A stretch of DNA of 64,000 nucleotides from Orbicella franksi (GCA_964199315.1 OZ116698.1:9796001-9860000); one strand, 5' to 3'. Positions 11,801-33,513 are shown, counted from the stretch's first letter. Numbers and translations are program-made. Notes: a model not told the origin generated them from the letters alone.

Positions 11801-14054
11801 GGCTCGACAAACCGGTATGGGCGCCTTTAATCAAGTCAGACAACAAGGAATGGGAGCTTTAGGACAAGTACAGAATATGGGACAGCAAGGCTTTCAACAG
11901 GTATGCCAGGGTTATATCACTTGCGTCTTAGATCGCTGAGTCCTAAATCGCAGTTATATCAGCTGTAGTTCAACGAAAATAGCTTAAACAAGACTACTTA
12001 AGACCAAGTTACGTTGTCCTTGCCACTGCCATGCAGTTTATTATGCAATTATTGACGGCTTATCAGGTAAATATTGCGTGCACATACATGTTTGATACAA
12101 ACATGGTGCAACCACACTGTTTATTTCTTAGGTTTTGGAAAATAGTGAAATTATACAAACGAAATGATCAAACCTCTTATAGCTTGCAAAAAGCCTCGAT
12201 GAAATGAAAGGAACGAAGGTGGAAGGTGTAGTTATTTCGATCATTTTAGCTTTAAGTTGTCAATTCTGAGAAGTTTACAACGGGACTCCATGTATGTTTA
12301 CACAATTTAACGCGAAATCTTTCTCAATAAGCTTCCTGTCACCGTTTTCTTTTCAACATATGGTAGGAAGGTTCTTTGAATCCCAATCCTCTTATAAAGT
12401 CTTACAAGACAGATCGTGAAAATGAATGTATTTGAACACAAACGATATTCTTTCGAGCATCTTGAAAGCTGCGAGGCACACTGTAACCTGATCGAGCGTT
12501 TGTTTTGCCCTAAGGTGCAAAATCTCCAAGGCCAGCTCAGGCAGACTGGTCAAGGATTATATGGTCAAGCACAAGGTATGGCCCAAGGGCTACAGGGTCA
12601 GCTAATGCAGCAAGGTCAGGGACTGTACGGTCAGGCTCAGAGAATGGGAGGAGGCTTACAAAGCCAGTTAATGCAGCAAGGACAGAATCTGTACGGTCAA
12701 GCGCAGAGCATGGGTCAAGGCGCCTTTCAGCAGGGGATGAACCTTGGCAGTCAACTGCAGCAGCAAGGACAAAATGCTTTCCGGCAAGGAGCTGGAATGG
12801 CACAGGGTCTCCAAGGTGCGTTTTTCAGCAAAATAAAATTAAAAAAAACTCTCTGTTAGGCTACCACCCTTGGTCCAGGAAAAAGTTGTTGCTCAAGAGA
12901 AACGGTCGTCGAAGAGAGTGGTCGTTAAGAGATCTATAAAATTGACTTTATATCAAAACCGTTTTCGCAGTTGCCTTATGTTTATTGCATCGTACTACCG
13001 ATTACTTCTGAGTTCTTGCAGTTTACACAAATATCTGTTACTAGCTCAATGGAACTGCCTTGTCACCTAATAACCCAAGTTTAATTACATTATTAAGAAA
13101 ACAGTTCACCTTTTTCCTTGACAATGAATGTTAAACTGCTGTTTAACAGAGTTCAACAGTTTCTTACCTTGGCTTGCTCCCAATGTGTTACATTTACAGG
13201 CATGGGATCAAATTATTACGGGCAGGCTATGAATATGGGTCAACAATTTCAACAACAAGGCCAGCAACTCATGAACCAGGGACAACAGCTGTCACAGCAG
13301 TTGGCAGGCAAGTGTATATGACTTTCAAACCCACCAAAGGAATGTTTTGATCTTACCCTTTTTCCGAGAGGAAGGAATTTAATCATCATTCAGAAGTTGA
13401 TGATCTGTTCCACGTTCGAAATTTTCTTTGCAATTTACGTTAGGAGTATCAGTGAGAAAAAGGTGGCGTTACAGTGGTCTGGTCTCGACAACCTAATCGG
13501 AAGTCGTCTTCTGAAGAGTAATGTAGAAAACCGTGTCTGAGGTGAGGTCAACAATCTCCGACTGTTGACCTAATTGATAATTTTATCATGTTTGATCGGT
13601 ATTTACATTTCATTCATTGGTACTTTTCCCGGTCCTGCATTCATTTTCTTTTCCTAGCCAATGCTGAGTGGGTGCTGTGTCTGAAAAGCTAAAAATGTGA
13701 AGGACCTGGTTTTCCACCCGTATATTTCACGTTTTTGCTTTTGATTTTCGAACAGTATAGTGCAACTCAAAACGTTAGTCCAAGCTAATTTGTTATCAAT
13801 CAACTTTTATAGGAATGGGATCAAATTATTATGGACAAGCTCTGAATATGGGTCAAGGATTCCAACAGCAAGGCCAACAACTCATGAACCAAGGTCGACA
13901 AATGTCAGGGCAAGTGGCAGGCCAGGTACCGAGCCCTCAACAGCAGTGGCAGCACCTGATGAATCAGGGACAGAAACTTCAGAAACAGGGCCAGAGTCAG
14001 GGAGAGGCCCTCAAGAAACAAGGCGAACAGGCGGCCGGTGGTGGCTCCAAATAG
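947..14054 (+). CDS. Gene 1 (5'-incomplete, 17 exons, ~1,100 aa): F5/8 type C domain + F-type lectin fold + Gln/Gly/Met-rich 11-mer repeat protein
   Basis: Phase-consistent exons with AG/GT borders: 947-1126, 4646-4779, 5668-5809, 6032-6121, 6564-6872, 7061-7224, 7767-7914, 7987-8691, 9291-9376, 9574-9594, 9702-9777, 10682-10986, 11271-11448, 11764-11900, 12515-12815, 13200-13307 (GC donor), 13813-14054 (TAG). They join into one open frame. The first visible exon starts at an acceptor, so the start codon lies upstream of the window. Confidence 0.85.
1247..2828. mobile_element. Non-autonomous DNA transposon, Kolobok-like (TTAA target site)
   Basis: TTAA at 1243-1246 and 2829-2832, with 10-bp terminal inverted repeats GGTATCAGTA/TACTGATACC. 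No intact ORF. GG...CC termini with a TTAA target fit Kolobok better than piggyBac (CC...GG). Confidence 0.7.
3426..4450 (+). mobile_element. 5'-truncated Penelope-like retroelement (RT C-terminus + GIY-YIG endonuclease)
   Basis: ORF 3473-4291: INFTMEVE...LPFLG...VFVKPT...LHYHSH (PLE RT thumb region) and VVYNFKCDQCDAGYVGYT...RVDGH (GIY-YIG). It sits in an intron of gene 1. Confidence 0.9.
4355..4392 (+). ncRNA. Minimal hammerhead-ribozyme-like motif at the 3' end of the Penelope-like element
   Basis: TTGACAA (4357-4363; U3/A8 variant of CUGANGA), stem II GGCG/CGCC, GAAA, palindromic ACGT stem III and a GUC site. Stem I is only 2 bp. Confidence 0.6.
4819..5114 (-). mobile_element. tRNA-derived SINE
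   Basis: Minus strand reads GGGAGCAGGGATGGCGTAGTGGTGAGAGCG (A box) ... GGTTTAATCC (B-box-like), then a body and a (TTTACA)n tail. Confidence 0.85.
6032..6872 (+). CDS. Gene 1, F-type lectin (fucolectin/FTP) fold, 2 exons
   Basis: VNLASNTTAEQSST...ASRAIDGN / SC...NPWWRVDLG...FEIRIGNS...NEKCG...IRC...GQYINIRIP...LSLCEVVPYG matches the F-type lectin consensus. Confidence 0.9.
7061..14054 (+). CDS. Gene 1, Q/G/M/N-rich 11-residue repeat region with a central charged helical segment
   Basis: Repeats such as LQGQGMGMVNQ, FQNQGAGMANQ, GMGALNQARQT and GQGLYGQAQGM (ORFs 8022-8735, 11289-11480, 12416-12859, 13815-14054). The charged segment is in exons 9574-10986. Confidence 0.85.
10267..10540. repeat. 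Interspersed repeat, unclassified
   Basis: Imperfect internal inverted structure (ATATCCAAACAC / GTGTTTGGATAG) and no coding signal. Family assignment is from recollection only. Confidence 0.4.
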
Positions 14055-15721
14055 AAATTATATGGCAACCAAACTGCTTTTAATTCTCAAGTGGGCAGTC
14101 AAGATAAACCAAAGTGAATTGAATGTGCTACAAATGGTCTATTACGTTTACTATTAAGTTCTATAATTGCGGCTCTTGAGACATTTTGGAATGTTTCGCG
14201 GTTAAAGTAAAAAACGTGCTAGTGAAGCTGCTGTTGCCATGCTTACGTACCCTACCAATCAAAGGCGCCTCTAATAATTCTGCTAAGTTTGCAAAATTGC
14301 TTTTTCTTCCTCCATGCAGTAAGAATCGAGGAGAGTTTGACTTCAAAATTTTAAATTCCCTAGCGAGAGAGGTAGTAGTTTTAAACGAGTGTATTATTTC
14401 CAGTGTCCTTTCCTGACCACAATCTTCAAGTTTTCGCTTCATGAGAGCAAACGCTAACCGACAACAGCTAAAGATAGCTAGGAATTTTTCAAGTTGTTAC
14501 ATTACTTACTATTTTTAGGGCCAAGTCCCATCAATAATAGCTTGCTTTAGCAAAAACAAGGCTGCGTATGGGTTGAGAAGCAACAATTTGTAGTTGAAGT
14601 TACACGTAAGCGTTTGCTTCGATAAGCTATATATCGAAACATATATTTAAATTGATGTGCGACTTTTATCGTTTCTTGTAAGGTGAACTAAGCCTCTCAT
14701 TTGATGCCGGAATTATACTCACATACTACTGTCGGTACTCCCTGGGATAGTGCTTCGGCATATTCTTTACTGGTTCTCAGAAACACAAATGATATAGGAC
14801 GAGAGTACATTAAAGCGGGTTGAAATCGACAATCACAGGTCAGGACCAAAGCTAATACACCAAAAAAAAAAAAACAAAAAAAAAACAAAAAAAAAACACT
14901 TTGTATTAACGTGGCCACACCCTGATATTATCGTTTCCTTTTGTCCTTCTTTACCCCTTTTCCTTTCCCGCTCAGGTCAGTTCCCTAGCAGCATCTCTTC
15001 GTCAGTCAGGTTCACAGGCTGTCTATATTGAATTGGAACAGTGGTGGTGTTCCCAATGCTTTCCCACGATAAATCAGCGGCATAAGGGGCGATTACTTTT
15101 AAAACGCGGAATGTGAGAATTACGTTTTACTCCAACATGGAAATCGCATTTCAACTTTAATTTCGTGGTTACATGATGTTTTTCGATCCAGACGAACGAA
15201 AAAGAAAGCATCGATACTTAACGTCAAGTCTGGTCAGTACGCGATTTACATTCATGCTCTCCTAGCAATGAAAACACTACACTTCACTTTTGTTTAAAAA
15301 AAAATCCCTTTTATTCCTTTCACATCATATTGCAAGTGTTTTACCTGGGGTTATTGAAAGTCATTAAACACATTGCAGAAAATAAACAATAATATCACTA
15401 TGATTGGATTTTCTCGTTGCTATATTTTTCTTGAGAAACATTCACTTTTCATTCTGAAAGAGCTCTCTACCTCACCGTCTCACAATGTACGAGTACAAAT
15501 ACAACATAATACAAATATATATAGCTTGTAAAACTCAAACTGCAATGTTGTTGAATCCGGTAATCCACCTGTCACTCGCTAATTATCTGTAAAAAAAAAA
15601 AAGAGATAAAATGAGAATTGAGAAATCCATCAGTGCAATATGTACGAAATGGTAAGATGAAACAAGGAGAGCAGAGTAAAGATCTTTTAAAGTTAAACAG
15701 TACTGAACTGGTTGTTCATCA

Positions 15722-15813
15722 GGCCCCGGTTGTTCGAAGGCTGGATAACGCTATCCACCGGATAAATCGCTATTCAGTGGATAAGAGTTAACAAAACAAA
15801 CCACGCTATCCGC

Positions 15814-15848
<35 letters not shown>

Positions 15849-15868
15849 TCTTTCAAACAACCCGGGCC
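15722..15868. mobile_element. MITE (near-perfect hairpin)
   Basis: GGCCCCGGTTGTTCGAAGGCTGGATAACGCTATCCACCGGATAAATC is mirrored by GATTTATCCGGTGGATAGCGTTATCCATCTTTCAAACAACCCGGGCC. Confidence 0.85.
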
Positions 15869-16422
15869 ATAAACGGAAGAAAATAGTACCATGTTTTAGG
15901 CGATAACTAAAATAAATTTTTATGATCAAATACATTTTAAAAACACCGACCTTCGTCTCTTTTCTTACCATTTCCCCCGACAATTCTCTTTTAGAGTAGT
16001 TTCTCGTTTTCTTGTCTACTATTGCAAACAGTCCGGCGTGTAATGATTAAAAGCATTAACATTCAAACATGGGCCGGCTTTCGAATTTCCTTACGGTCGA
16101 GGCTGGTAACGCGGTAGGAAGAGAAAGAGCCTCAAATCAATCTTTCTTTAAATTATGTATCAGGAGCTTATTGAGCTGGCTATGTGGAATCTGATTTCAT
16201 AACTCTAAACCTTATATATTCATTAGTTCACATGCTGAAGACGGGTTGTGGGCTGTCACATACTCGTATCTGTTCTACAGTCCGTCGTAATTGTGTATAA
16301 GTCATGTCATGAAACAAAAACGTAAATAAATTAACATTGTTTTTTTTCTTTAGAGTTTATTCTTTTTTGTATCACAAGAGTGTAAAAACCCTGCTGATGC
16401 CGCGAATAATTTGCAGGCGTAT

Positions 16423-17489
16423 TTATCTTCTAGGTTTTTCGGAACAACTTAAAGCTGACAACATGCCGCACAATTGTCTTCGCTTCTTTTTTAAATTACC
16501 TTTGCCAAAAAAATTACGTTTCTGGGCTACGACTCTCTTCCCTGGTTTTCTTCTGTGAAGAATTTTACTCCGTCTCGCGAGGCCTCCATTATCCAAACGC
16601 GACACACGTGCACTCTTTGGCTTTGCCACACAGCATTCACGTGAGCAAGCCTTGGTGCAATGCCGAGAACAAATGACTGGACACGGGGAGGAGGAAGCAG
16701 TTGGAGTTGATATTAGTGGGGACAGAGAGATTGGGGGAGGCTGGACAGCACTTGACGATTCTTTCTGATCATGTTGATGAAGATGAGTGTCTGGTGTTAC
16801 CGGTGTCAGCGACTTTGCAACATTTTGATGATGATCCCTTGCACTTGCTAGGCGTCTAAGATTGTCCAATACGGATCTGTCGCAGCAGTGAATTGGGCAT
16901 GTACTTGCACACCTAGATCTACATACCGCAGGGCACACTGTCGGCCAGGGTTGCTGTTGTGGCTGAAAATATGGTGGTGGTGGTGGTTGCATGTAGTACG
17001 CTGGTGGAGCTGGTGCAGGGGGTGGGACATAAAAACGTGTTGCCGGTAACGAAGCAAATTTGGTGCAGCATGCGACGGGGCAGGAGCCCATGCATACGGT
17101 GTTACAAACTGCGGGACATGTTGCAGGTGGTCCTGACGCCACTGGGTAGGTCGAGGGCGGTCCTGGAACAACATAAGGTGGAGGGGGTGGAGGGTAAGGA
17201 GCAGAAATGTATATTGGAGGAAGGGGTGGAGGAGGTGGAGGTGGAGGCGGAGGCGGAGGTGGTAGAGGGGCAGGGGCGGGAGGAGGGTTTTGAATAACTG
17301 GCAGAGGAAGGACGCAACATTCATCAGGACAGGTTGGCTTGCAAGAATGCGCACAGTACGAGGGACAGGAGCTCGTTGAGGTACAACAATGGGCTGGACA
17401 CGAGTCGTCACACTGTGATTGACAGTTGCCAGGGCAGGGTACATTGACGTGGAAATGAATGCTTTCTGTTGGCTTTGGTTCGGCCGCAA
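16423..17489 (-). CDS. Gene A terminal exon: five minicollagen-type CRDs, polyproline, basic tail
   Basis: CPGNCQSQCDDSCPAHCC, CPSYCAHSCKPTCPDECC, CPAVCNTVCMGSCPVACC, CPAVCRSRCASTCPIHCC, CPVICSRHCTKACSRECC. Confidence 0.9.
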
Positions 17490-20400
17490 CTGTAAATAGA
17501 CAGTGCGCATGGCACTTTTAGCAATCATGCAATTGAGAGACCAAGAAGTAGTACTCACCAGAATCTAAGTGTTCTCTAATAAGTCTGGAATGAAGGAGAA
17601 GTGAGCCTATACAAGACTGTGTTAACTTGCGGCCTGTCTGGCGTTTATTTTCTTGCATGAGACAATCACCATTATATGGTTGCAAAGTAACTGCTATTTT
17701 AACTCTAAAACAAGTCTGAAAACTTCACTGTGCATTTTAGTACGTCGAGCAGTCGCCGTTACGTCCTAACTAAAACCGTGGCAGTCCGTCTGTTTGAATA
17801 AAAGGGCTCACTTTGCCTTCAGTGCATTTACACTACAATTAAATTTGCTTTCTTTCATATTGCTAACGACAATAAATGGAATTGCGTGTTTTGATGTTGT
17901 TTGCTCACTTCCTTTATGAATGAGGTGCATTAAACTTGAACCCTCCAATACAGTGTAATGTTGAATTAAATGTAGCCCCATAAAAAAGATTTTCACTTTT
18001 GTGTATTTCAGTCTTGTACAGAAGTGTGCATCGTTACGTGGAACATAGTTGGCGTAGTTTAGTGTATGTTGGTTTCAAGGTCTGTCAATCTTAAAGCTAA
18101 GAAAAGCTAATACAAATCTGTAGGTTTTAGCCGCAGAATAGTGATTGATGCCTTTAATATAAGACAAGAATACCAACCTGTTCTTATGACATTGTCCCAA
18201 CCCCAATATGGCGAAAGAATATGTTTACACGTTTATTGGAAGAGAAAGGAACGCTAGCAAGTGGGCTGCTACCCTCTCTAAGCTCCCGCTTTAAATCCTA
18301 TTCTTAAATTTAAGTCCTTAGAAGATCAAAAGCGACTCTATACACTGCTAACCTTTCACTTTACAGAAGCCCCATTTGCCGTCCCGGTCATAACTGTATG
18401 TTGTACCGCACCATGGCTTGACTTGGTCTCCTCGAATGCAGTGATGATACATCATGCCGTTGTACGTGAAGGGAAACTGACAGCATGCTCCGTGAGCATT
18501 TCCACCGTACGTGTGATGGCAATCTAGACACCATGCAGACAAGTTAGCAGTTTTAGTTCAAGCATCAGAGCCAGTATCATCGGCATTTCAGTTTTAGCGT
18601 CTTTAAGAAATTGTCAATCTGTAATTTTTAATTAACAACTGGTAAATGCTTAGAGGTTATGCTTATTTAATGGGAAGAACCTAGTCCCAATCAGGAGAGA
18701 GGTCACCCCAATGTTTTTGAAAAAAAAAAGAAAATAAAACAAAAATGTTATTTCTGAAGTTCTGGTTAAACATTGATTGGAATAAAAGTTTTGCTTTCTT
18801 TCGTTTTTATAGTTTTAGCGGCCATTGGCTGGTGAAACATTTGTGTTTCTCGCTTTTTATTTTCTGGGACGTGAATTCTGGAAGGCTTTTACTTACTTCC
18901 ACAGTAACCCCATTTATTGTCCGTGTCGTAGTCTTTCGTGGTAGCGCACCACAGCCTTCTACTGTCAACGTTTGAACAGCTGTTGTAATCTTCTCCATTG
19001 TAGGTGAATGGGAACATACAGCAAGCTCCTTCTGAGTTTCCACCATGCGTCGGAGTACATCCTAGCACTGACAAAAACCAAAAGATATTCAAATGCAAAT
19101 AGAACCTGGTGACGCGCGGATTAAATAATGGCAATTTCCAGATCTGTTGGTGGCGATGAAACATGACTTGCACAGGTAGTTTCGGTGTACATGTATTGTT
19201 CCTTTTCTCCCAACATGCTACCTTTTATTCATGGTCGTTTTTAGTTTTTTTGTTTACATTTTGTCTAGATCACTAGGAACGAGATTTCCCATTTTTTAAA
19301 ACCGTCGCTGTACCTGCTACCCAATGTTGACTTTTTACTGCATAACAGTCTTCTTAACTTCTCTTCTTTAAAGCCCTTTGCTAAAATGACTTGCTTTGAC
19401 AATAAGGACTATTCAATATCCTGTCATTACAGCAATGAAATGATCTGAAAAGCTTGTTGCCCTTAATTATTGAGGAAACTATACAGAATGTTCCATTGCG
19501 CAAGTCAATCTTGATCCGCACAGTTTTTTTAATCAACTTTTCAAGTGAACGTATGGTGTATTATAAACATCAGAAACAAGTGATTTATCTGTTTATCTCA
19601 AAACTCACAATATCTTCAATGCCATTTAAATACAATAAATAACAGTTGCCACTGCGACGACCATCCTGAAAATGGATTCTTCTTATAATCGGCTTCAACA
19701 ACGGAACTTTGCTTTATTCCCTTCAAACTTCCAAACAATTCTCACTTAACTGACTTACTGATTTTGCCTGAAAAAAGTATCTATGTATAGCATTATATAC
19801 AAACCGGCAATGTTCCAAAACAACACTATAGCACACTGTTTACCCTTAAGAAAGATTACGATCAGAAAATGCTCTATCATTTTAGCTTATCTGCGATTGC
19901 CACCAACGTGGTACTTTATATGTTTTTTGGTTTGGCCTTTATGTGTGTTCCTTTTTGGAATTCCTCCCTTTCTATCCGAATTAGCTCTTGAATTAGTAGC
20001 ATGTAACGTCTTTTTCTCCATAACGGCATATTCTGGCTCAGTATCGTCATCAGAATCGTTAAAAGGTATATCATCATTGTCATCTTCACTATCGCTGTTT
20101 ACATCGTTTCTTCCAAACGGGGAATTCCTTTGGCCTAAATCATTAAGATCATTCCGATCAATTTCAACGGGGACGTTGTACATCATGTTGCCAGGCGCTT
20201 GGTTGTTAATCTCGTTTTTCTGGTAATTTTCATTTTGCATTCCGTTAGACAGCTGGTCTTCCTGGTTTCCCTGGAGGTACATCATTTGTTGGCCATCTCC
20301 AGGGCTGTCTTGTAGCGTATTTCCATCTTCGGTGAAGACTAGCTTAGAGAGCACATTCTGCAGCTGGTTAAGCAAACCAGAAGCTTGAACTGGCTCTCCG

Positions 20401-23400
20401 TTCGGGAACGCCTCTGAGTTTAATTCTCCTCCATAATCTGAAGCTGTAGGTGCTGTTGGTGCTATTAGTCCTGTTGGTGTTGGAGCTGTAGGTGAAAGAT
20501 CTTCAGCTCCTTTATTTTTCTTCAGAAGTAGCATAATAAGTTGCCGGGCTTGCTCGAACAGAGCTTGTTCTTTAGACACTTGGGCCGCCAGGTCTGTTTG
20601 CTGCTTGGCCAAGAAACTTTGTTGAGTTTGGATCTCAGCTATTTGCTTCTTAATAAGTTCGATATCGATCATAGTTTGCTGATTGACTGGTGGCTGAGAT
20701 GTCGTCGGCGGTGCTTGGGTTGCGTTGGAAGTGGTGATTGTAATATTGACATCATCGTTATGTGAATGATTCAGTCCAGCTCTAACTGGACTAGGCGTGG
20801 CAACAGCATCATGCGTAGTGCCAGTCTTCGTCATGGCTTCCTCCTCTCGTGTCAGTAAACTTTCCAAATGTTCCTGCTGATCCTTAAGTTCGTCTTGCTG
20901 TTCTTGCAAAAGCTTTAAGGCATTCTCTTTTCTCCGGAAATGCTGATAATTGTTCAGCATCTTGTCAATAAAATTGACCCGCTCGTCCTTCAACGATTGG
21001 CCTTTTTGCTTTGCCTTATGGCCATCAACACTGTATTCTTTCATCCATTTCGTAAACAAACGTTTTATTTTATTCATCTCTTTAGATCCAATATGTGGAT
21101 GCGAAAATTTCTTCTGTCCTTTTCTATCCTGCAGACGAGCAGTGATCTTTTTTGCGTCCACCTTGGCTGCGTCTCTATTGTCAGGATGACAAGTACATTT
21201 CTCGTGACACTTTCCATTGTCCCGGCCATCACATTCCATGAGGCAATTGCAGCTTTCCCGATTGACCTTTGGCCTTTCCAAGGAAGGCATTGGTATTTCT
21301 TCATGTTTTAGAGCGTTTAGGGATTGAATTTCGTCATATCTTGCGGGACTACAGCATACGATTGGACAAGTCGGATGACATGGCGAGTGCGACGTGTGAC
21401 AAATGGGGGCGCAAGGTTTTAATTTACCTGAAAAGAACGCAGCTTTTCAGACAAGTTTCATGTTCCATTGATATACAAGAAAATGCAACAATTAGGAAAA
21501 TAACACCTTACCTTTTGTGTTCTGCCTCCAAACACAGTGCTGTGAAACTGCTTGCTGCAGCCGCGAAATCCATCTCTATTATCTCAGTTTTTGGTTTCCA
21601 AACCGTCGAAAACTCGTTCGCTCTTTGCAGCAGAATATCGTACTCTTTGCAAATACTTTTGGATGCACAATTAACTACATAGATTCTCGTGCTAATCGGC
21701 ATCGTGCATTGTAAAGGAATATCATCTTCAGCGGGTCTTAGGTCCTTTTTTTAACTTTTTTCATTCCAATTTGCTTATGAACACTTTCGCGGCTGAGCGA
21801 GTCAGTTGCCCAGAGCATTGCGTTTTTGACGCAGGACATTAGGCAAAGCTACGTGCCTATAACACGAGATTCCATGTTAAGTTATGTAATTGCTATTTTG
21901 TTTTTTTGCGCACTTAGACTGCAAGGGCTAGAAATAATATAATAGAGTCCAATAGACAGAAATCAGAAGGAGAGGGACAAAGCAGTCAGTCACTAACTGG
22001 CTCCTGAGTGCACTGAAAGATCTTTATAAAATGAAATGGAAAATCTACACTAGTTGAATATAGACAGAGAATAATAGCAACCATTAACAACCTCATACTC
22101 AGGCATTCCCTGAAAATAATGACATCAGTATTTCTCGGAGCAAACCCATAAAAGCGGTTCATTGTGCTTACATTTTCGATTTAGGCTAGGTTGAATGGCA
22201 TGTCGAGAGATGACATATCAAAAGACAATCGCTCTGCACGTAACACTGAAAACACTGCATGAACGAATATTTAGTTCGGGCAGCTCCATGCAGCGTGAAG
22301 CCAGCTTATGCAAAAGATCCCACCCCACAAACCAAAATGAAAGACCAATTCAAAAATATTAAAGGCTAGAAATAATTGGTCTATTTACCATCAGGGTGGT
22401 AGTGGAAGTGATAGTGTACATCTTTTCCACCTGAAAAAGAAACAAATAAAAGAGAAACATATAAGACCTCGTGCTTTAATTTAACGCGAGAGAGCAAAAG
22501 ATCATTTGGAATATACTGACAAACTGATAAAAACGTATTTTGGTTCGTTCTGTATTACAAAATGTTTGAATATTAATTCGTCTTATGTTTTATGATATTA
22601 TCAAACACTCACCAGTCGGCGGAGTGCTTCCAGGCGGAGGGGCAGCTACAAAAAAAATGAATTAATTAAATAAATAAAAATAGAAAATTAAAATTAGGCA
22701 AGACTGAGACCACTTAGAACACGTAACGCTACAACGACATGATAGAGTCCAAAATGAAAGCCGAGATGCAGCTATGAGAAACTTTGGCTTTGGTTGGGTT
22801 TCATCAGCACAGTACAGGAGCAAAAAATAGAGCACCCAATACGAGGGCCAAATGTCCACTAAGTGCCTATGTAACGACCTCAGATGAAACTCAAATCCAA
22901 ATGTTCGGGTTTGGTCAACTTCACATGCACAGCGGGATTGTGGATATAATGTCTATGTCGCGAACAAACACTGTCTTGCAGGAAATGCATGGCCAATACA
23001 ATCATAAACATGAAAAGCATATTGGGTCGATCATCTGTTAACTTTTCTTAATTTCGCTATTTCGCGAGTACATACGTGTATATCGTTTGAAATCAGTGGG
23101 CACGAAGCCCAGAGAAAAGATCTTTGTGAAATAAGGTTTACGGTTACAATCGTTATTTTCAGGTAAATAAGCTTTGGTTATTGCTCATTATAATTTTTTG
23201 CTCTTTAAAACAAAAGTGTTCAGAAAAGAGTAATTCCATTTTAATAATAAGGTTAACTCATTTCAATTACCATTCACTGCGTATTTCACGAGTTTGCTCC
23301 ATTATTAAGTTATTTACGTTAAGCAACAACCGTTAAATAATAACAGATTAAACTTTTATGAAGCTCATTTTCCCTAAAACTACAGCGTCTACCTGTCAGT

Positions 23401-26400
23401 AACTCTCTTCCCAAGAAACATCACTTACCTGTGACTGGAACGGGCGGTGGCTGCTGTGGTGGTGGGGCTGGTGGGGGTGCCACTGGTGGCGCTGCAGGAG
23501 GGGCTAGCGAAGGTGGTGGAGACGGCGGCGGCGGTGGTGGTGGGGCTAGCGGTGGTGGCGGCGGTGGCGATGGTGGTGGTGGTGATGGTGGTGGGGAAGG
23601 TGGAGGTTGAGGTGGAGGTCCTGCTGGTGGTGGAGCTGGTGGAGCCATTGCTGGGGGCTCTGCTGGCGGTGGAGGTGGTGGCGGTGGTGGTGGCGGCGGC
23701 GGCGGTGGTGGTGCAGGTGGTGGTGCAGGGGGTGGTGCAGGCGGTGGTGCAGGTGGAGGAGGAAGTGGTGGGGGAGCTGGAGATGCTGGAGGTGCTGGTG
23801 GCTGCCCTGCAGGAGCCGTTGGTGGTGCTGGTGTTATCTGTGGAGGGGCGGCTGGTGGAGGTGACGGTGGCGCTGGACTCGGCGCTTAAATGACAAAAGA
23901 TAAAATAAATTTCTCACTGGAGAATAACTTTATACAATAATTTAATATGAAGTTATCAAAATAGAGCAGATCAATCAAACCTATTGCAGTTTTCAAGATA
24001 CGACCTCATAATTATATTCAACAACTCGGATAACGCTAAAAACGCATGTAATAAGGAACTGGTTTGTGTTTACCTTACACACATTCCACGCACATTCCAC
24101 ACGCATTCATTCATACGCTCGTTCCACGCATATTTCAATCATCATGATTATCTGGTTGTTTTGAAAACGGCAAGGATTGACCACGTGACTGGCGTGGGTA
24201 CAGCTGCCTGCTCTTCTCAAAAGAGTTCAGTCATGCTAACAAACATCTCATGTTGAGAGTGAAATTTACATTTAAAATTTATGTTTAAAAGCTCAATTAG
24301 CATTCTATTTCGACGGTTAGGCCCACCGTCTACGCTAATCCGTGACGAAAACGGAGCTTTTGAAAAACGCTCTTCAAACCGAAGGAATTTGAAAACACAG
24401 GCTTTACGTTTTAGCATGGACGAAAATCATTTTGAAAACGAAGCTTTTCGAAAACGTTGACGTCACGATAATGCGTTTTCCTCAAACACAAATCCAATCT
24501 GACCTGAGATTGTTGCGTTTTCAAATTTCTCCGGCATAGTGTGAAAGGGACCTCAGTTTAAGAAATTATCTTTTTGACCAAAACAAAGGTCATAATCTAC
24601 CCATTCAAAAATAACGTGTTGCTCGCAACTTGGTCTTTAGTCGTGGCTTGTCACGTGAGGAAAAACCAATATTATTCGGTAGGTTCTGATTGGTCTTTGG
24701 TTTAGAGTGGTTTTCAATTGAGTCATAAATTCAAAACCAAATCAATTACCTACCAGTTAGACCACTAAGCTCTCAAATCGTAGGAAAACCAAAATCAAAA
24801 CCAAAGTAATTGCCTCGTTACGTTAGATACTCAGAATATTGAATAATGTTCTATATCTAATTGCATTAAGATCAGCTAGAGGTAAATATTCCTATCACGT
24901 GATCTTGCCAAAGTAAAACCATACGTCGAACAGAGTCGTTGCTAGGCATGGAAAGAAAGTGACGAACTTTGATAGATTGCCAATTTTTTAGACCAATGTT
25001 TCATGTATAAATTTACAACCTTATGGTGGTTTGAAGGTTTTACGATAAAAGGAGAATTTACGATGAAAACATTGGTGGATGGCACACTTTGCTAAGTCCA
25101 TCTTTCAAGCCATCGTAACATCTTTCACGTGACCATTTAGGCCCTATTCATTGGAGACAAAATTAACATAATTCTGGGAATAAAGTATATCTTTACGATG
25201 CTTAAGTCCAGTTTTTGGCTTCGAAACTCACCTGGTACACCAGTTACTTGAACGTTAATATATTCCGAGCAGTCAGTTCTAGGCATAACTGAAATGGTTT
25301 TGTCACCATCCAAGTGAAGTATGAGCTGTCCGTAAAGATCTTTTGCTCTAAAAGTGATAAACTTGTGAAGGTCAGGGTTTTTGAACGTTAGTCTTATTTT
25401 GAACTCATCCCCAGTAACTTGCCATCCCGTTGCTTTCATGTGTGATATAAGGTGGAACGGATGACCAATCATGTTGATGAAACGAAGTGCAATACATTTG
25501 CCTGTGAAACAAAGTGATATTTTTTTGTTTAATGGGAGGTTCTATTTAAGCCCTTATCATACAGGTTAAGAAATTTCTTCCGCTTTATAGGTTAATAATA
25601 CATTCACTTTCACGAAATAGTTGTAAAGCACCCGAGAGGTTATTGTTATAGATTTTCCCAATAGGGAATAGTACATTCAGAAACAAGATGCGAACGTTTT
25701 TGTCCCACAGTATGTGCAAAAAACATTGTGTTCTTTGGATGGCTAAGACTTTTAAACATTCTAAAATGCCTTTTGGCGTAAAAACAGGAATGGGATAACT
25801 ACATGTAAGGCAAACTATTAGCCAGATTAAGAATGGGAAAGTTGGAGTTGACTGAAGAAAACAAACGCCCTTCGTTAAAGCATGTTATGAATAAAACATT
25901 TTAAAAGTGGCGTCGTTCATGACCCATGTAAAGTAATTATCCTGATTACTTCCTGGCGGTCCGGAGGGATATACAGGTTTTCCAGGAACAGTCGGAGGTG
26001 GCGGTTCCCCAGGTATACTTGGAGGTTGTCCTGGTGGCCCAGGAGGAATCTCAGGCTGCTCTGGTTCTTGTGGACCTATTGTGTCACAATTTTTGTAGGG
26101 ATTGTCGTTCATTGCGTATGGGACAGCAATAAAGGAGCTTTCCAGTGCAAATTCGCTTGTGTGATTGTCGAAAGCCGCTGCTGTTTTCCACGAAGATCCA
26201 ACTTTATCTGAAGCCGTTAAATACCAGCCTTGATGAATCAAGCCAAACGAAAATGTGTCTTTAAGATCCGGACGACGACCAATGTAGAAGGTGGCGTCCT
26301 TAGCTGAAAAGGTAATAACAATAACAATAACGATAACGATAACGATAAGGATAACGATAACAATGGTAACTTTATTTAAGTGTCAAATCAAAGAATATGA

Positions 26401-29400
26401 ATACAGATATTTGGAAGTAAGAGTCTTTCCATGAAAGAGAAAACGACAGAAAAAATAGAGAAAAAAAAGTTAATAAATAGCTTCAGTTTCTTTAAACGTT
26501 TAACAAATTGTATTTAGTCAGACAGCGATTTGCCCGGGAACTTGGCAGAACGGCCAACGTGAAAAATCGCTTCGTACGCTTGGCCCGAGGTGGGTGCGGA
26601 AGGGCGAAAGGGGAGGAGAGGTACCAAACATCGTTTAAACTTAGAGAGTGCCTAAACCGCGTTGCCATCCTTAACATTTCTATACTCCTTCATAAACTAA
26701 CTTTGGTAGAAAAAGTAACCCTTTCCGCATTTGTTTTCCATATAGAATGGTAGTTCTTTCTCATATCTTCAGTAGGCACATTGCATCCTTTTCATCTAAC
26801 CTGGTTTTAGTAATCTCTTAAAAATACTTTGATGATTATCCATTCCGGTACGGTGCATTCTTTTGAGACATTTTGAAAAGGGCCTTTAAAAATACCCAAA
26901 CAGCAGTTTTCCACCATCCAGTTTACATACATACCAACTCACAACATGCCTACCCCTATATACCTTCAGTCGCAAAAAGGTGTTTGTGGACAAGGCCTCC
27001 CTACACAGACCATTATAGGGACTAGAACTCCCTCCTTTGAAACATCTGGACTAACGTTAAACAGCGACAAACCTGTCATTATATCATTGGGCCCCGAGGG
27101 AAACAGTCCGTTTTGTTTTCCCTCGATTTTCCAAGGCTCTTGGGAGAACAAAACTAATTTAATTGTTTTTCAAGGGACCAGTAATTAAGTGTTTTGCTTT
27201 ATAGCTGGAGTTTAGTGTAAAGAAATAAGGCAATATGAACCTCTGCTCAGTGGAAGAGCAGGCGATAATTGCTTGATTGTCGCACTCCGGGCAACATTTG
27301 GATTTAGGCATTGCCACGTGACAATAAATCAACCAATAAGAGTAATACGTGATCTTGAGCAGCTCTGAGAAATCAGAAATTACTTCTTATTATGATGTAT
27401 TCACTGAATATTTACCAAAGTTTAAACTCGCGTGGGTTGCTCTAAGCATAAAACCATATTTCTTTTGCCTCAGGAAATAGCCTCGTTTGCAGTAGGACTC
27501 CAAAGAGATGGTGTTTCGATCCCGGCTGAACCCGGGAACATGTGCAATGAAGTATTGGCCAGCTGGTCCTATCATAAGGTCTTCACCCTTGACGTATAAG
27601 AGTGCGTTCTGTTGGTAATTCTGTGTGGCGGGATGGTTTATAGAGTAAATTAGATACATCGCGCCCTGCCTGACTGAAAAACGAAAGAGAGGAAAAAAAC
27701 AAAAATCAGCAAATGGCTTCCCACTTCTATGGTCAGAATAATTTGACCCTTCTAAAACAGGAACCTTCATCAGCTGCGGTGCTCCGTGCTTCTGCGAAAC
27801 TCGCTGTTAGTTACCCTTTTTATATGCCCCGACGTAAAGAGAGTTGGATTACTGAAGTTCCGAAGTTGTAGAGGCACCTTGCATACATGTAGTGTGATTG
27901 GTTTCAGTCAAGTGAACTCTCGAAAGAAAATTACTTACAGGATTTTGCTGCTCCACTGCTGGTAACCTCCGTCGCTGCAGTGGCACTAGCTGTAGCCATA
28001 GCAGCTGCAGATATAGCGGCTATTGCTCCAGCAGCTCCACCGGCTGATGCTCCTGCTCCTGCTATACTTGCTGCACCTGCTGCAGCTCCGGCTCCAGCTC
28101 CGGCTCCGGCACCGGCACCAGCTCCCGCTCCACCTCCTGCACCAGCACCTGCTCCAGCACCCGCCCCGGCAGCGGCAGCGGAAGCGGCAGCAGCAGCTCC
28201 ACCCCCTCCACCCACAACACCACCCACAATAGGTAGACCAACCGTTACTCCCGCTTCTGCTTCTGCCTCCGCACCGGCTCCTGCTGCGGCTCCACCACCG
28301 GCTGCGGCTCCACCACCGGCTTCGGCTCCACCACCTGCCTCAGCTCCTCCACCTGCCTCAGCTCCACCGGCTCCTCCCCCTCCTCCTCCTCCACCACCAC
28401 CAGCGCCTCCACCAGTGGTTCCTGCCGTGCCAGCTGTACCAGCAGTACCAGCCGTTCCAGCTGTTCCAGCAGTACCACCAGTCGCGGCAGTACCTCCTCC
28501 TCCTCCGCCACCGCCTCCTCCACCACCCCCGCCTCCTGCTCCTTGCGTCGGCTTCTCGGTGGGAGGATGCTGACCGAAAATGTTAAAAGTGCCACCACTC
28601 TGTACTTGTGCCATTAATATTTTTTGAACAGTTTCCAGCGCTATCATGTGGGCTATTCGTTTACCAGCCTCTTCACCAGCTTTCATCCCCGCCTCCAGTC
28701 CAGCTTTTGCCCCGGCTTCGGCTCCAGCCTTAGCTCCCGTCTTTGCTCCTTCCTGGGCCCCGCTGCTGGCTCCTGCCTGGGCTCCTGCGTAGGCTCCAAC
28801 TGTAGCAGCGTGAACAACTGAATTGTTTCCGGTTATTACAGCTGAATAAAAGGGAAAAATGTGACGTCTTCAGTTCTTTTAAAAACCGTTGACTACACCT
28901 CGTCCAGAGAGTGCATAATCCTGTAAAAGAGGCTTCTCTTCTGATTTTTTTTTAAGCCAATCTTGTAGCGATTAATGCAAAAAAAAAAAAAAACAGTTAC
29001 TTTTAGACCAAAAAAAAACTTGCTATAAACGTTTCATCGAAACCTATTATACGTCTGAAATTTGCTAAAACGAAGGACTATCAAATATTTACTCTGAGAA
29101 AATCCCTGAGTATACTTACGAATAGCAGATTCATTTCCACCGGCGTGCGGAATTGAAACACCTGGTATTCCTGACGGTATTCCTGGTATTGAGTTTTTTC
29201 TTTCTTTTCCATGGACTGAAATATGAATTATAAATGCAAATTCGTGTTAAGGTTACAGTATACCTTCAGATCGGCAATTTTCTTCAAATTTGGATTTTTG
29301 GTTCAAACTAATGGTCGAAGAGTAATCTCTAATTTCTGAAAACAAAATTGAAAAAAACCTAATATTGGCGGAGAAATGGATGTTTTACGTTATGGCCGGA

Positions 29401-32400: not shown

Positions 32401-33513
32401 CGTTGGATTTTACGGTATTGATAACGATAAATTTAATTCTTTGAATTCTAAGTACCCGATGCTTCAAAATGCCAGGATTGTGTTGAATTATTGCTTTTTT
32501 TTTTTGTAATTTGCCATAGTGAAAGAACATGACTGCATTTGCTAGATGAGGTTCACTGGTTTTTCAGTGTTTACCGTTGTGAGCTACACTCCATAAATAA
32601 AGTTGATTATTATTATTATTATTATTATTACTATTATTAAAAGGTGCAAGTTTGGCTTCCTTTTATTTTGTGCCAAGCCAAGATTAATACTTACGTCTAA
32701 AATTTGTGACATTTAATTTAGCAGTATACAACTCGGACCACAGAAGCTTAACAGGTAAGACTCCCCCCTGCAATATAACTGTCCACGCTGAGGAAATGTT
32801 CATCATTACACGGAAAGAGTTAACTTTACTTTGAAACCTGGATTAAAATTCAGTTACTAATTAAGGGATGAAACTTCATTTTTTGGCTGCACCGAGGGAC
32901 ACCTGTGATTACATTACTTGTGATTGTTAGGAACGTAGACTCGATGACAGAAATTCTACCCAAACTAATGAACTGCAGATCAACGGTTAAATGTTTTGGC
33001 TGACAGGTTAGTCTCAGATTCCGTAAAATATATGGCCACCCGTGATCCAAGCGTAACTAATAACCTTCTCTCTTTATTTGAAAACACTCTAAGCTGCAAT
33101 GTTTACTCTCTTTTAACGGGGTAAGTACCTTTGAAGGACAAATAAGAAAATGGACTATGTGGAGAGCCCGTGCTCTAGTTTCTGGGAACGATAAAACTGG
33201 ATTGTTTGTGGCAGGTATAAGCCATTTAGGTCGGTTAAAAACGTCGCCATTTATCTGACATCTTTGAGAGAAGCCAAATCGCCTCCGGCTATGGTCAGAA
33301 GTGTTTATCATTTTGTACTGTTTACAATTTCAGTTTATTTTAGGAATCTTCCAGGTGTAAGAACCAGTGATTCAAACCAAGCAAAAAATTCCACCTACCA
33401 ATCGCACGGTGTCTTGCTCCATTGAAACGGCCGTGTGGTTTGGGCTTTCTTCCAGCACTGATCAGCGTCAATGTTAAAACGATGAACACACAGAAACCTC
33501 GAAGAATTTTCAT
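16423..33513 (-). CDS. Gene A, long isoform (~1,310 aa): secreted Gly/Ala-rich + AbfB-like + unnamed domain + polyproline + 2x FN2 + 5x minicollagen-type CRD
   Basis: Exons 33513-33399 (signal peptide MKILRGFCVFIVLTLTLISA), 29215-29120, 28841-27939, 27673-27416, 26303-25950 (donor uncertain), 25501-25232, 23884-23429, 22645-22613, 22430-22389, 19061-18897, 18523-18353, 17489-16423. All junctions are phase 1 and the sum is 3,930 nt. Minus-strand AATAAA at 16356-16361. Confidence 0.75.
18353..19061 (-). CDS. Gene A, two fibronectin type II domain exons
   Basis: GGNSEGACCMFPFTYNGEDYNSC...WCATTKDYDTDNKWGYC and GGNAHGACCQFPFTYNG...PWCGTTYSYDRDGKWGFC. Confidence 0.92.
19887..21427 (-). CDS. Gene A alternative terminal exon: atypical CRD, 6-Cys motif, Gln-rich coiled coil, acidic stretch, basic tail
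   Basis: Acceptor at 21428, open for 1,541 nt to TAA at 19887 (ORF 19887-21290). Phase 1, matching exon 22430-22389. Minus-strand AATAAA at 19713-19718. Confidence 0.8.
23429..23884 (-). CDS. Gene A polyproline exon
   Basis: APSPAPPSPPPAAPP...PPPVPVTG, flanked by an AG acceptor and a GTAAGT donor. Confidence 0.85.
24319..24553. mobile_element. Degraded MITE
   Basis: Imperfect termini AGGCCCACCGTCTACGCTA / TAGTGTGAAAGGGACCT and internal (TTTGAAAAC) motifs. Confidence 0.45.
25950..27673 (-). CDS. Gene A AbfB-like (beta-trefoil carbohydrate-binding) domain + Pro-rich linker, 2 exons
   Basis: HVPGFSRDRNTISLESYCKRGYFLRQ...F/AKDATF resembles the AbfB/CBM42-type motif ISLES..PG.FLR...F..DATF seen in otogelin-like proteins. 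Confidence 0.65.
27939..28841 (-). CDS. Gene A Gly/Ala-rich exon (GAxAG zipper, poly-G, GTA and GA repeats, poly-A)
   Basis: 903-nt exon with a good acceptor and a GTAAGT donor. Its N-terminal GAxAG run is homologous to gene B exon 52349-52108. Confidence 0.85.
29251..30686. mobile_element. Non-autonomous DNA transposon, Kolobok-like (TTAA target site)
   Basis: TTAA at 29247-29250 and 30687-30690. 19-bp inverted repeats GGTTACAGTATACCTTCAG / CTGAAGGTATACGGTAACC (1 mismatch). Lies in the first coding intron of gene A. Confidence 0.8.
32011..32417. mobile_element. MITE, Tc1/mariner-type TA target
   Basis: TACCGTAAAATCC ... GGATTTTACGGTA termini. Confidence 0.75.

Follow-up and report, generated by a model that had tools for sequence, protein, structure and literature searches.

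The window, a 64,000-nucleotide stretch of Orbicella franksi DNA, was found to contain gene A on the minus strand, and all gene A coordinates refer to that strand. The RNA evidence consisted of reads and contigs from three studies (raw reads of X24 and assembled contigs of X1 and X5); run X22 contributed no reads. The upstream part of the gene was predicted to contain a series of shared exons, the splice sites and phases of which were read from the sequence, followed by a polyproline exon and two mini exons.

29215-29120, minus strand: predicted upstream shared exon, IPGIPSGIPG
28841-27939, minus strand: predicted upstream shared exon, Gly/Ala-rich
27673-27416, minus strand: predicted upstream shared exon, AbfB-like beta-trefoil piece
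26303-25950 and 25501-25231, minus strand: predicted upstream shared exons, two-Cys domain
23429..23884, minus strand: polyproline exon common to both isoforms, with Pro making up most of its about 150 residues and the frame open into both tails
22613..22645, minus strand: 33-nt mini exon AAPPPGSTPPT common to both isoforms, splice sites read
22389..22430, minus strand: 42-nt mini exon GGKDVHYHFHYHPD common to both isoforms, with the phase-1 donor after 22389 as the branch point

The predicted upstream exons (25231..29215) were found to be collinear and conserved in the coral loci L005 and L006, and the AbfB match among them was weak (E 0.026). A signal-peptide-like candidate first exon was observed at 33513-33399 (minus strand). 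The 3′ end of the polyproline exon was joined to 22645 in X24 reads (as a loose end) and in X5 contig 9, followed by the mini-exon joint 22613->22430 in eight X24 reads and in the same contig. The motif GGKDVHYHFHYHPD occurred once within the window, and the motif together with its donor was conserved in L001, L005 and L006.

The long tail was found to contain two FN2 exons followed by a terminal exon.

18897..19067, minus strand: first FN2 exon of the long isoform, joint 22389->19067, Pfam fn2 PF00040 E 3.7e-18
18353..18523, minus strand: second FN2 exon, joint from 18897, Pfam fn2 PF00040 E 8e-18
16423..17489, minus strand: long-isoform terminal exon with five canonical CRDs, Pro-rich linkers, basic tail and stop, joint 18353->17489

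The two FN2 domains scored 65.7 and 64.6 bits against the PF00040 gathering cut-off of 22.2, and the joint 18897->18523 was supported by 11 X24 reads as well as by contigs. The CRD pattern C-x3-C-x3-C-x3-C-x3-CC was matched exactly at 17436, 17367, 17118, 16935 and 16683, and the composition of two FN2 domains and five CRDs given to this tail by the first-pass annotation was recovered from the Pfam and pattern matches. The six-cysteine pattern of nematocyst-wall CRD proteins was thus found in the long tail, whereas the short tail contained a variant of it. Proline stretches adjoined the CRDs, as the polyproline exon and as the Pro-rich linkers between them. No collagen Gly-X-Y run was found in the translated part of either isoform, and the product was therefore classed as a CRD protein and not as a minicollagen. 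A reading of 19663 (ATGGTCGTC...) as another first coding exon of the FN2 part was considered and rejected; only use of a weak donor would avoid the stop that comes after it, its ATG was not conserved, and no joint was found.

The short tail was found to contain a single 1.5-kb coding exon followed by its untranslated region.

19887..21427, minus strand: alternative terminal coding exon including TAA, with a variant CRD, a second Cys motif, two heptad helices, an acidic region and a basic tail
19151..19886, minus strand: short-isoform 3′UTR, reached by X1 contig 3 to 19151 and by X5 contig 9 to 19257
19718-19713, from 19533 and from 19229, minus strand: candidate poly(A) signals AATAAA, ATTAAA and AATAAA, respectively, read from the sequence and given by the minus-strand first base

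The order proposed earlier, with this exon placed between the polyproline and mini exons and the FN2 exons (19067-18897, 18523-18353), was confirmed. The acceptor ttcttttcag|GTAAAT was followed by 513 open codons to the TAA at 19889-19887, and the exon therefore has the stop of its own that had been claimed for it. The exon was found to be single-copy in the genome. The CRD pattern, the AF2 helices and the net charge all agreed with the earlier description of one CRD, a coiled coil and an acidic domain. The CRD contained the pattern C-x3-C-x6-C-x3-C-x3-CC, with a second loop of six residues. The AF2 helices were placed at residues 145-200 and 249-308 (pLDDT 70-89), and these long helices contained heptad a/d spacing, with invariant residues three to four apart in helix 1 (F152, M156, N159, F163, L170, Q177, L180, Q184, L187, L191) and in helix 2 (I258, I265, L272, L279). 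The complex prediction for three copies of residues 140-312 scored 0.00, a run without controls that gave no verdict. Residues 310-470 were acidic with a net charge of -26, followed by the basic tail. No Pfam family was found for the exon other than a sub-threshold, coiled-coil-like kleA_kleC match (E 0.054), the ESM Atlas search by features returned no usable match, and the cluster look-up of its homologues returned no named protein. The short-tail CRD may belong to the multivalent C-CRD type and not to the capping N-CRD type, because the rule of PMC4863159, applied to its sequence, gives the marks of the former.

The proximal exon carried its own TAA and the three poly(A) signals, and the X24 depth, about 8.8 before 19674, was found to drop to about 2.3 below it; neither poly(A)-tailed reads nor a cleavage site were found. 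The AATAAA previously assigned to this exon was present at 19718-19713 and was not conserved in a relative of 84% identity. The contigs passed beyond it to at least 19151, so that this poly(A) site is at most one of several.

The donor at 22389 was found to be joined in RNA to both tails, with the frame open into each and GT..AG ends at every joint, as had been expected of one phase-1 donor fitting two acceptors. The proximal acceptor stood as described, with the exon starting at 21427, whereas the FN2 exon was found to start at 19067 and not at 19061, since the acceptor in use was the AG at 19069-19068, six nucleotides further upstream and still in frame. The joint 22389->19067 was present in seven X24 raw reads with six start places and in an X1 contig (depth 196). 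The joint 22389->21427 was present in one X24 raw read, an X1 contig (depth 112) and an X5 contig; the raw-read counts come from the single run X24 (166 reads), and the joint to the 1.5-kb exon was otherwise backed by assembled contigs. Both joints of the junction-read check named by the first-pass annotation were thus present. The X1 contigs of both tails opened with an identical 30 letters of the mini exon, which is expected of assembly branching at an alternative splice. By word depth (112-133 against 196 in X1, 17 against 49 in X5), the ratio of short to long form was roughly 1:2 to 1:3, the assembled contigs being unable to give levels or ends. X5 contig 9 (2343 nt) was found to run from the polyproline tail through both mini exons and the whole 1.5-kb exon into the 3′UTR to 19257, and the X24 reads linked the mini exons to FN2, so that both tails were tied to the same transcription unit. 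With both joints leaving one donor, the claim of one gene with two C-terminal versions was borne out, and gene A is very probably a single transcription unit with an alternative last exon and two tails.

An independent start of the FN2 part within 19887-19061 was looked for in RNA and not found, since no other joint and no loose-end cluster feeding the FN2 exon was present in the reads or contigs. The locus could otherwise be two genes, the upstream one ending at the 1.5-kb exon and an FN2-CRD gene having its promoter in the 820 bp between, with 22389->19067 as an occasional conjoined read-through. A depth of about 3 was found to persist at 19101-19291 just before the FN2 exon, X1 contig 3 reached 19151, an in-frame ATG at about 19163 would give a hydrophobic leader as the sequence is read, and in another coral an FN2-CRD transcript (L008) retained 432 nt of the upstream intron. 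However, of roughly ten reads that cover the FN2 exon at its 5′ edge, about seven came from the mini exon, and the depth at 19100-19300 was not above that at 19300-19670, so no start was visible. The candidate ATG at 19663 was GTG in L003, the mini-exon-to-FN2 joint recurred in another species, and the paralogues B and C contained polyproline followed directly by FN2 and CRDs. Two genes are therefore very improbable here. The low depth (about 2-3) was unbroken between the alternative exon and the FN2 exon, and some read-through or retained-intron RNA therefore exists.

The nested exon order was found to be conserved in four distant coral loci (L005, L006, L011 and, in part, L002), with matching splice phases checked in L005 and L006. 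The recurring joint was contained in L009, a spliced transcript contig of another coral, which started with HYHFHYHPE|ILGCSPTHGG across the mini exon and FN2. L001, L003 and L004 were collinear with the genome and uninformative on splicing because their introns were still present, and L002 was uninformative because it is a metagenome scaffold and not a transcript. The exhaustive HMMER search returned 16 representatives and no long gene model with the alternative exon; the full-length architecture in other species was inferred from genomic order.

The short form could also be non-functional noise of premature intronic polyadenylation, and the raw junction reads of X24 (one for the short form against seven for the long form) point in that direction. 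This is extremely improbable, as the 513-codon frame stayed open, the exon was under purifying selection (dN/dS 0.2-0.34), its motifs were conserved in 29 homologues with identity down to 40%, and its position was conserved down to about 30% identity among the coral loci, and the word depth in X1 and X5 placed the short form at between one third and two thirds of the long one. The tail swap is real and old among corals, and it is of an ordinary kind of alternative splicing.

The intron upstream of the alternative exon was found to contain two conserved non-coding blocks.

21503..21581, minus strand: conserved non-coding block, 76 nt upstream of the alternative-exon acceptor, with the core TGGATTTCGCGGYTGCA and a 5′ splice-site-like AAG|GTAAGG end
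21677..21720, minus strand: further conserved intronic block CCTTTACAATG...GCACGAGA

The core TGGATTTCGCGGYTGCA was invariant in seven sequences, including loci at 40-63% coding identity, and a 17-mer of the 21503-21581 block was unique in the 497-Mb genome. No Rfam family matched the intron and exon region, and folding of it gave a z-score of -0.24, so the element is neither a known RNA nor one with an obvious structure. As a regulator of exon choice it is a candidate. As a coding cassette exon the block was rejected; at 62 nt it would shift the frame to a stop in either tail, it contained no RNA depth, and its length differed in L005. The blocks could instead be the promoter and first exon (21503-21720) of a nested gene formed by the 1.5-kb exon, with the joint to 22389 incidental. 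The strong conservation of both blocks just upstream of that exon would fit such a gene, as would the position of the acceptor-side block, which has an invariant AG in front of it and, at its end, a consensus 5′ splice site lying 83 nt short of the acceptor. However, none of the three runs contained RNA depth over the blocks, the 62-nt exon would join the 1.5-kb exon out of frame with a stop after two codons, the ATG of the block was not conserved, the CRD would be left without a signal peptide, and X5 contig 9 ran on directly from the polyproline exon. A nested gene is thus highly improbable.

For gene A as one gene with two tails, the shared N-terminal part would consist of a Gly/Ala-rich region, a lectin-like beta-trefoil piece, a two-Cys domain, the polyproline rod and the two mini exons. 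Splicing of the donor 22389 to 21427, with the transcript then cleaved and polyadenylated within the 3.3-kb intron, would give the short isoform, and skipping of the 1.5-kb exon to 19067 would give the long isoform. CRDs cross-link nematocyst wall proteins (PMC6910907), the walls form by CRD disulfide exchange, CRD valency is set by fold type, and the valency of CRD proteins governs how dense the polymer is and how it behaves mechanically (PMC4863159). The gene A product is probably a stinging-capsule wall protein and may be secreted. The long isoform, with two FN2 domains and five CRDs, would cross-link multivalently through disulfides, as do the proteins from which nematocyst walls are built. 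The short isoform, in which a single CRD is followed by two heptad-repeat helices and a tail that is acidic and disordered, would tie this polyproline rod to the network by its one CRD, and its helices would probably self-associate. It is a tentative and rather doubtful suggestion that the exon choice is an ancient regulated switch in stony corals, run by the 21503-21581 block with its decoy 5′ splice site, which wires the polyproline rod into the cnidocyst wall or tubule either as a five-fold covalent cross-linker or as an acidic-tailed, single-CRD coiled-coil oligomer, the two forms marking capsule types or maturation stages.

Use of an alternative last exon is already a textbook mechanism. 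A conserved exchange of five CRDs for one CRD with a coiled coil on the same rod would be a simple genetic tuning of the wall network, and the two tails supply isoform-specific probes for assigning each form to capsule types or stages. The alternative exon adds a coral-wide, uncharacterised module of about 500 residues without a Pfam family, and the compact conserved intronic element is a testable putative regulator of last-exon choice in a non-bilaterian. For annotation, the locus should be given as one gene with two 3′ ends and not as two genes.

Gene A was found to resemble Hydra CPP-1 (cnidarian proline-rich protein 1, of the nematocyst wall) in layout and pattern, as both combine a rigid polyproline stretch with six-Cys CRDs that cross-link by disulfide exchange; in CPP-1 the polyproline stretch has CRDs on both flanks, and its N-terminal CRD (CPAPCGGDLNCWPTCDATCC) is like the alternative-exon CRD in its longer second loop (PMC6910907). 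Unlike gene A, CPP-1 is small (26 kDa) with one CRD per end, whereas gene A contained no N-terminal CRD, two alternative C-termini, and additional Gly/Ala-rich, beta-trefoil-like, two-Cys and FN2 parts.

NOWA (nematocyst outer wall antigen) contains eight CRDs together with SCP and C-type lectin domains, and it is not known to have a polyproline rod, FN2 domains or an alternative tail. The long form of gene A is like NOWA in that lectin-type or other extracellular domains are followed at the C-terminus by several minicollagen-type CRDs in an array, as in a multivalent cross-linker (PMC4863159, PMC12549020).

In calcitonin/CGRP and in the secreted and membrane forms of immunoglobulin mu, as in gene A, a donor chooses between a proximal terminal exon with a poly(A) site (a candidate one in gene A) and distal exons, although the genes and the lineage are unrelated. 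An intronic 5′ splice-site-like element helps regulate the calcitonin case; the conserved element of gene A, the regulatory role of which is putative, lies upstream and not downstream of the proximal exon. The swap in Nematogalectin A/B exchanges alternative internal exons of like kind, whereas in gene A an internal terminal exon, with a putative 3′ end of its own, exchanges all of the C-terminal domains as a set. Nematogalectin A/B of Hydra nevertheless offers a precedent, being a nematocyst structural gene with two isoforms made by nematocyte-specific alternative splicing, according to Hwang et al. 2010 as cited in PMC4195985.

The window is stony-coral DNA, to judge by the runs that contain it, which are coral metatranscriptomes and coral samples. 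Gene A was found to contain one donor, two acceptors and two open frames, with the exons read from the sequence as follows (the FN2 exons from sequence and RNA).

23884-23429, minus strand: polyproline exon
22645-22613, minus strand: 33-nt exon
22430-22389, minus strand: 42-nt exon encoding GGKDVHYHFHYHPD, phase 1 donor (one codon base left)
21427-19887, minus strand: 1541-nt exon (the 1.5-kb exon), acceptor ttcttttcag, 513 open codons to TAA
19067-18897 and 18523-18353, minus strand: two FN2 exons
17489-16423, minus strand: exon with five CRDs (minicollagen-type Cys-rich domains)

On translation, the frame was open to a stop from the 42-nt exon into the 1.5-kb exon and likewise into the first FN2 exon. 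The FN2 domains of the long tail were matched in Pfam (E 3.7e-18 and 8e-18) and no Pfam family was found in the 1.5-kb exon. By pattern scan, the long tail has five domains of the form C-x3-C-x3-C-x3-C-x3-CC, and the 1.5-kb exon opens with a single one of the form C-x3-C-x6-C-x3-C-x3-CC. The exons, phase-1 donor, FN2 and CRD counts described in the first-pass annotation were therefore correct.

RNA reads and contigs of four runs were placed on window 17000-22700; one of the four, X22, gave no placed reads. In X24, a run of raw poly(A) reads (166 placed), the joint 22389->19067 from the mini exon to FN2 was found in seven reads with six start places and the joint 22389->21427 from the mini exon to the 1.5-kb exon in one read, together with 22430->22613 (8 reads), 18897->18523 (11) and 18353->17489 (7), all with GT..AG ends. 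In the assembled run X1, one contig spans FN2-CRD (word depth 196) and a second covers the 5′ portion of the 1.5-kb exon (word depth 112). Their first 30 letters are identical and come from the 42-nt exon; a k=31 assembly graph that forks at an alternative splice would give just this overlap. A 2343-nt contig of a third study (X5) ran from the polyproline exon tail through both mini exons, the joint 22389->21427 and the entire 1.5-kb exon to 19257. Both mRNA forms of gene A therefore exist, in three studies, and by word depth the short form reaches roughly between a third and two thirds of the level of the long form. The proposal of one gene with two tails was thus borne out by both joints, and a check for an independent start ahead of the FN2 exon found none: in the RNA placed on 17000-22700 the entry of that exon contained no other joint and no loose-end cluster, and depth directly upstream did not rise.

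The FN2 acceptor in use lies 6 nt upstream of the one proposed earlier, with the exon start at 19067 and not 19061, by which Val-Leu is gained. The AATAAA proposed for the short form (19718-19713) was present but marks at most one of several ends, as contigs extend beyond it to 19151-19257. Below 19674 the X24 depth drops to about a quarter, which makes a proximal poly(A) site near this AATAAA plausible. The 3′ region of the exon contained two more poly(A) signals, the AATAAA was not kept in a close relative, and no cleavage site of the short form was seen in the RNA placed on the window.

The 1.5-kb exon was found to be single-copy in the 497-Mb genome and, within the window, missing from paralogues B and C. 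Coral assemblies and transcriptomes contained 29 homologues, down to 40% identity, and a search through all of 1.8 billion representatives returned only 16. Its dN/dS was 0.21-0.34 against three orthologues, with the minimum in the Cys-rich and helical parts. The alignment contained the conserved CRD immediately after the acceptor, two regions with invariant residues at 3-4 spacing, a DDVNITITT.NTT motif, an acidic Asp/Asn-rich stretch, and EKKTLH with a basic tail. A second six-Cys motif, SCxCxMECDG...KCHEKCTCH, was conserved at residues 59-82 (window 21240-21170, minus strand), with no match to the CRD pattern or to a Pfam family. AlphaFold2 with the alignment predicted confident helices at 145-200 and 249-308 and a small beta-hairpin at the second motif, the remainder being disordered (mean pLDDT 47).

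In two other genomic loci of corals, L006 (~51% identity in the alternative exon) and L005 (~41%), the order was beta-trefoil-like exon, two-Cys exon, polyproline, HYH mini exon, alternative exon, FN2, FN2 and CRD exon, and all three phase-1 splice sites, the donor and its two acceptors, are retained. In the genomic locus L011 (25-35% identity) a degenerate CRD opens the alternative exon, behind which lie two FN2 exons and then a five-CRD exon, and L009, a spliced transcript contig of another coral, starts HYHFHYHPE|ILGCSPTHGG. On these comparisons the nested two-tail design is old and maintained.

The 14-residue mini exon, GxKD(V/I)HYH(F/I)HYHP(D/N), was nearly invariant across corals (window 22389-22430, minus strand; L005 7221-7256; L006 9230-9265), while its flanking exons diverged to 41-51% identity; its His/Tyr motif possibly serves in metal binding or cross-linking. 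A third FN2 exon was found past the stop of the CRD exon in L005 (17176-17337) and L011 (12891-13052) and behind paralogues B and C (window 37489-37644 and 60755-60904), and no such match was found in the window downstream of the gene A stop (below 16423). The transcript contig L008, of another coral, contained spliced FN2-FN2-CRD with 432 nt of intron kept ahead of the first FN2 exon (1-432) and a short in-frame MSLKLCPLLVLG ahead of the FN2 domain; these 432 nt point to one of two things, intron retention or a minor internal start.

The intron immediately 5′ of the alternative exon was unusually conserved, being 92-94% identical in relatives with 84-85% overall identity. It contained two non-coding blocks (window 21503-21581 and 21677-21720, minus strand) present in seven of seven sequences and without cover in the RNA placed on 17000-22700. 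Block 21503-21581 contained the 17-mer core TGGATTTCGCGGYTGCA, which does not vary among the seven coral sequences and occurs nowhere else in the genome, with an invariant AG preceding the block and a consensus 5′ splice site, AAG|GTAAGG, at its end. Its inclusion as an exon would break the frame, and no Rfam family or unusual fold was found in it. The block is a candidate cis-regulator of exon choice, a lead rather than a finding.

Further upstream, the exon at 27939-28841 (minus strand) is conserved, rich in Gly and Ala and silk-like, with runs of GAGAGA and GTAGTA. It is collinear in L005 and L006, fits an AbfB-like exon in phase and appears to be part of the gene A N-terminal region. A candidate first exon (33399-33513, minus strand) reads MKILRGFCVFIVLTLTLISAGRKPKPHGRFNGARHRAI with a phase-1 donor and looks like a signal peptide with a basic propeptide, putatively linked to gene A. 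A neighbouring gene (8022-14083, plus strand) contained Gln/Gly/Met-rich repeat ORFs, which recall Cnidoin; such ORFs beside genes A, B and C suggest a cluster of capsule-wall genes. Cnidoin is an elastic, silk-like nematocyst protein (PMC4321713).

The long tail, with two FN2 domains and five CRDs, would act as a multivalent disulfide cross-linker, since CRDs make disulfide cross-links in CPP-1, Cnidoin, NOWA and similar proteins of the nematocyst wall (PMC6910907; PMC4863159); the wall role of gene A is putative. The short tail would combine one CRD with helices that probably self-associate. The first-pass annotation proposed that the short form could cap chains. Among CRDs it is the monovalent N-CRD fold that caps, and Val/Ile at position 4 together with Pro at position 14 favours the multivalent C-CRD fold (PMC4863159). 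In the alternative-exon CRD (CAPIC...CPIVCC) position 4 is Ile and a Pro follows the fourth Cys, so this CRD looks multivalent on sequence alone, a call made uncertain by its longer second loop.

No description of the polyproline-FN2-CRD protein or of the 1.5-kb exon was found in the full-text literature searched. As an alternative last exon, the mechanism is textbook; the two-tail finding is solid, of use in annotation and in nematocyst biology, and in principle unsurprising. Nematogalectin, as cited in PMC4195985, is a precedent for alternative splicing in a nematocyst structural gene.
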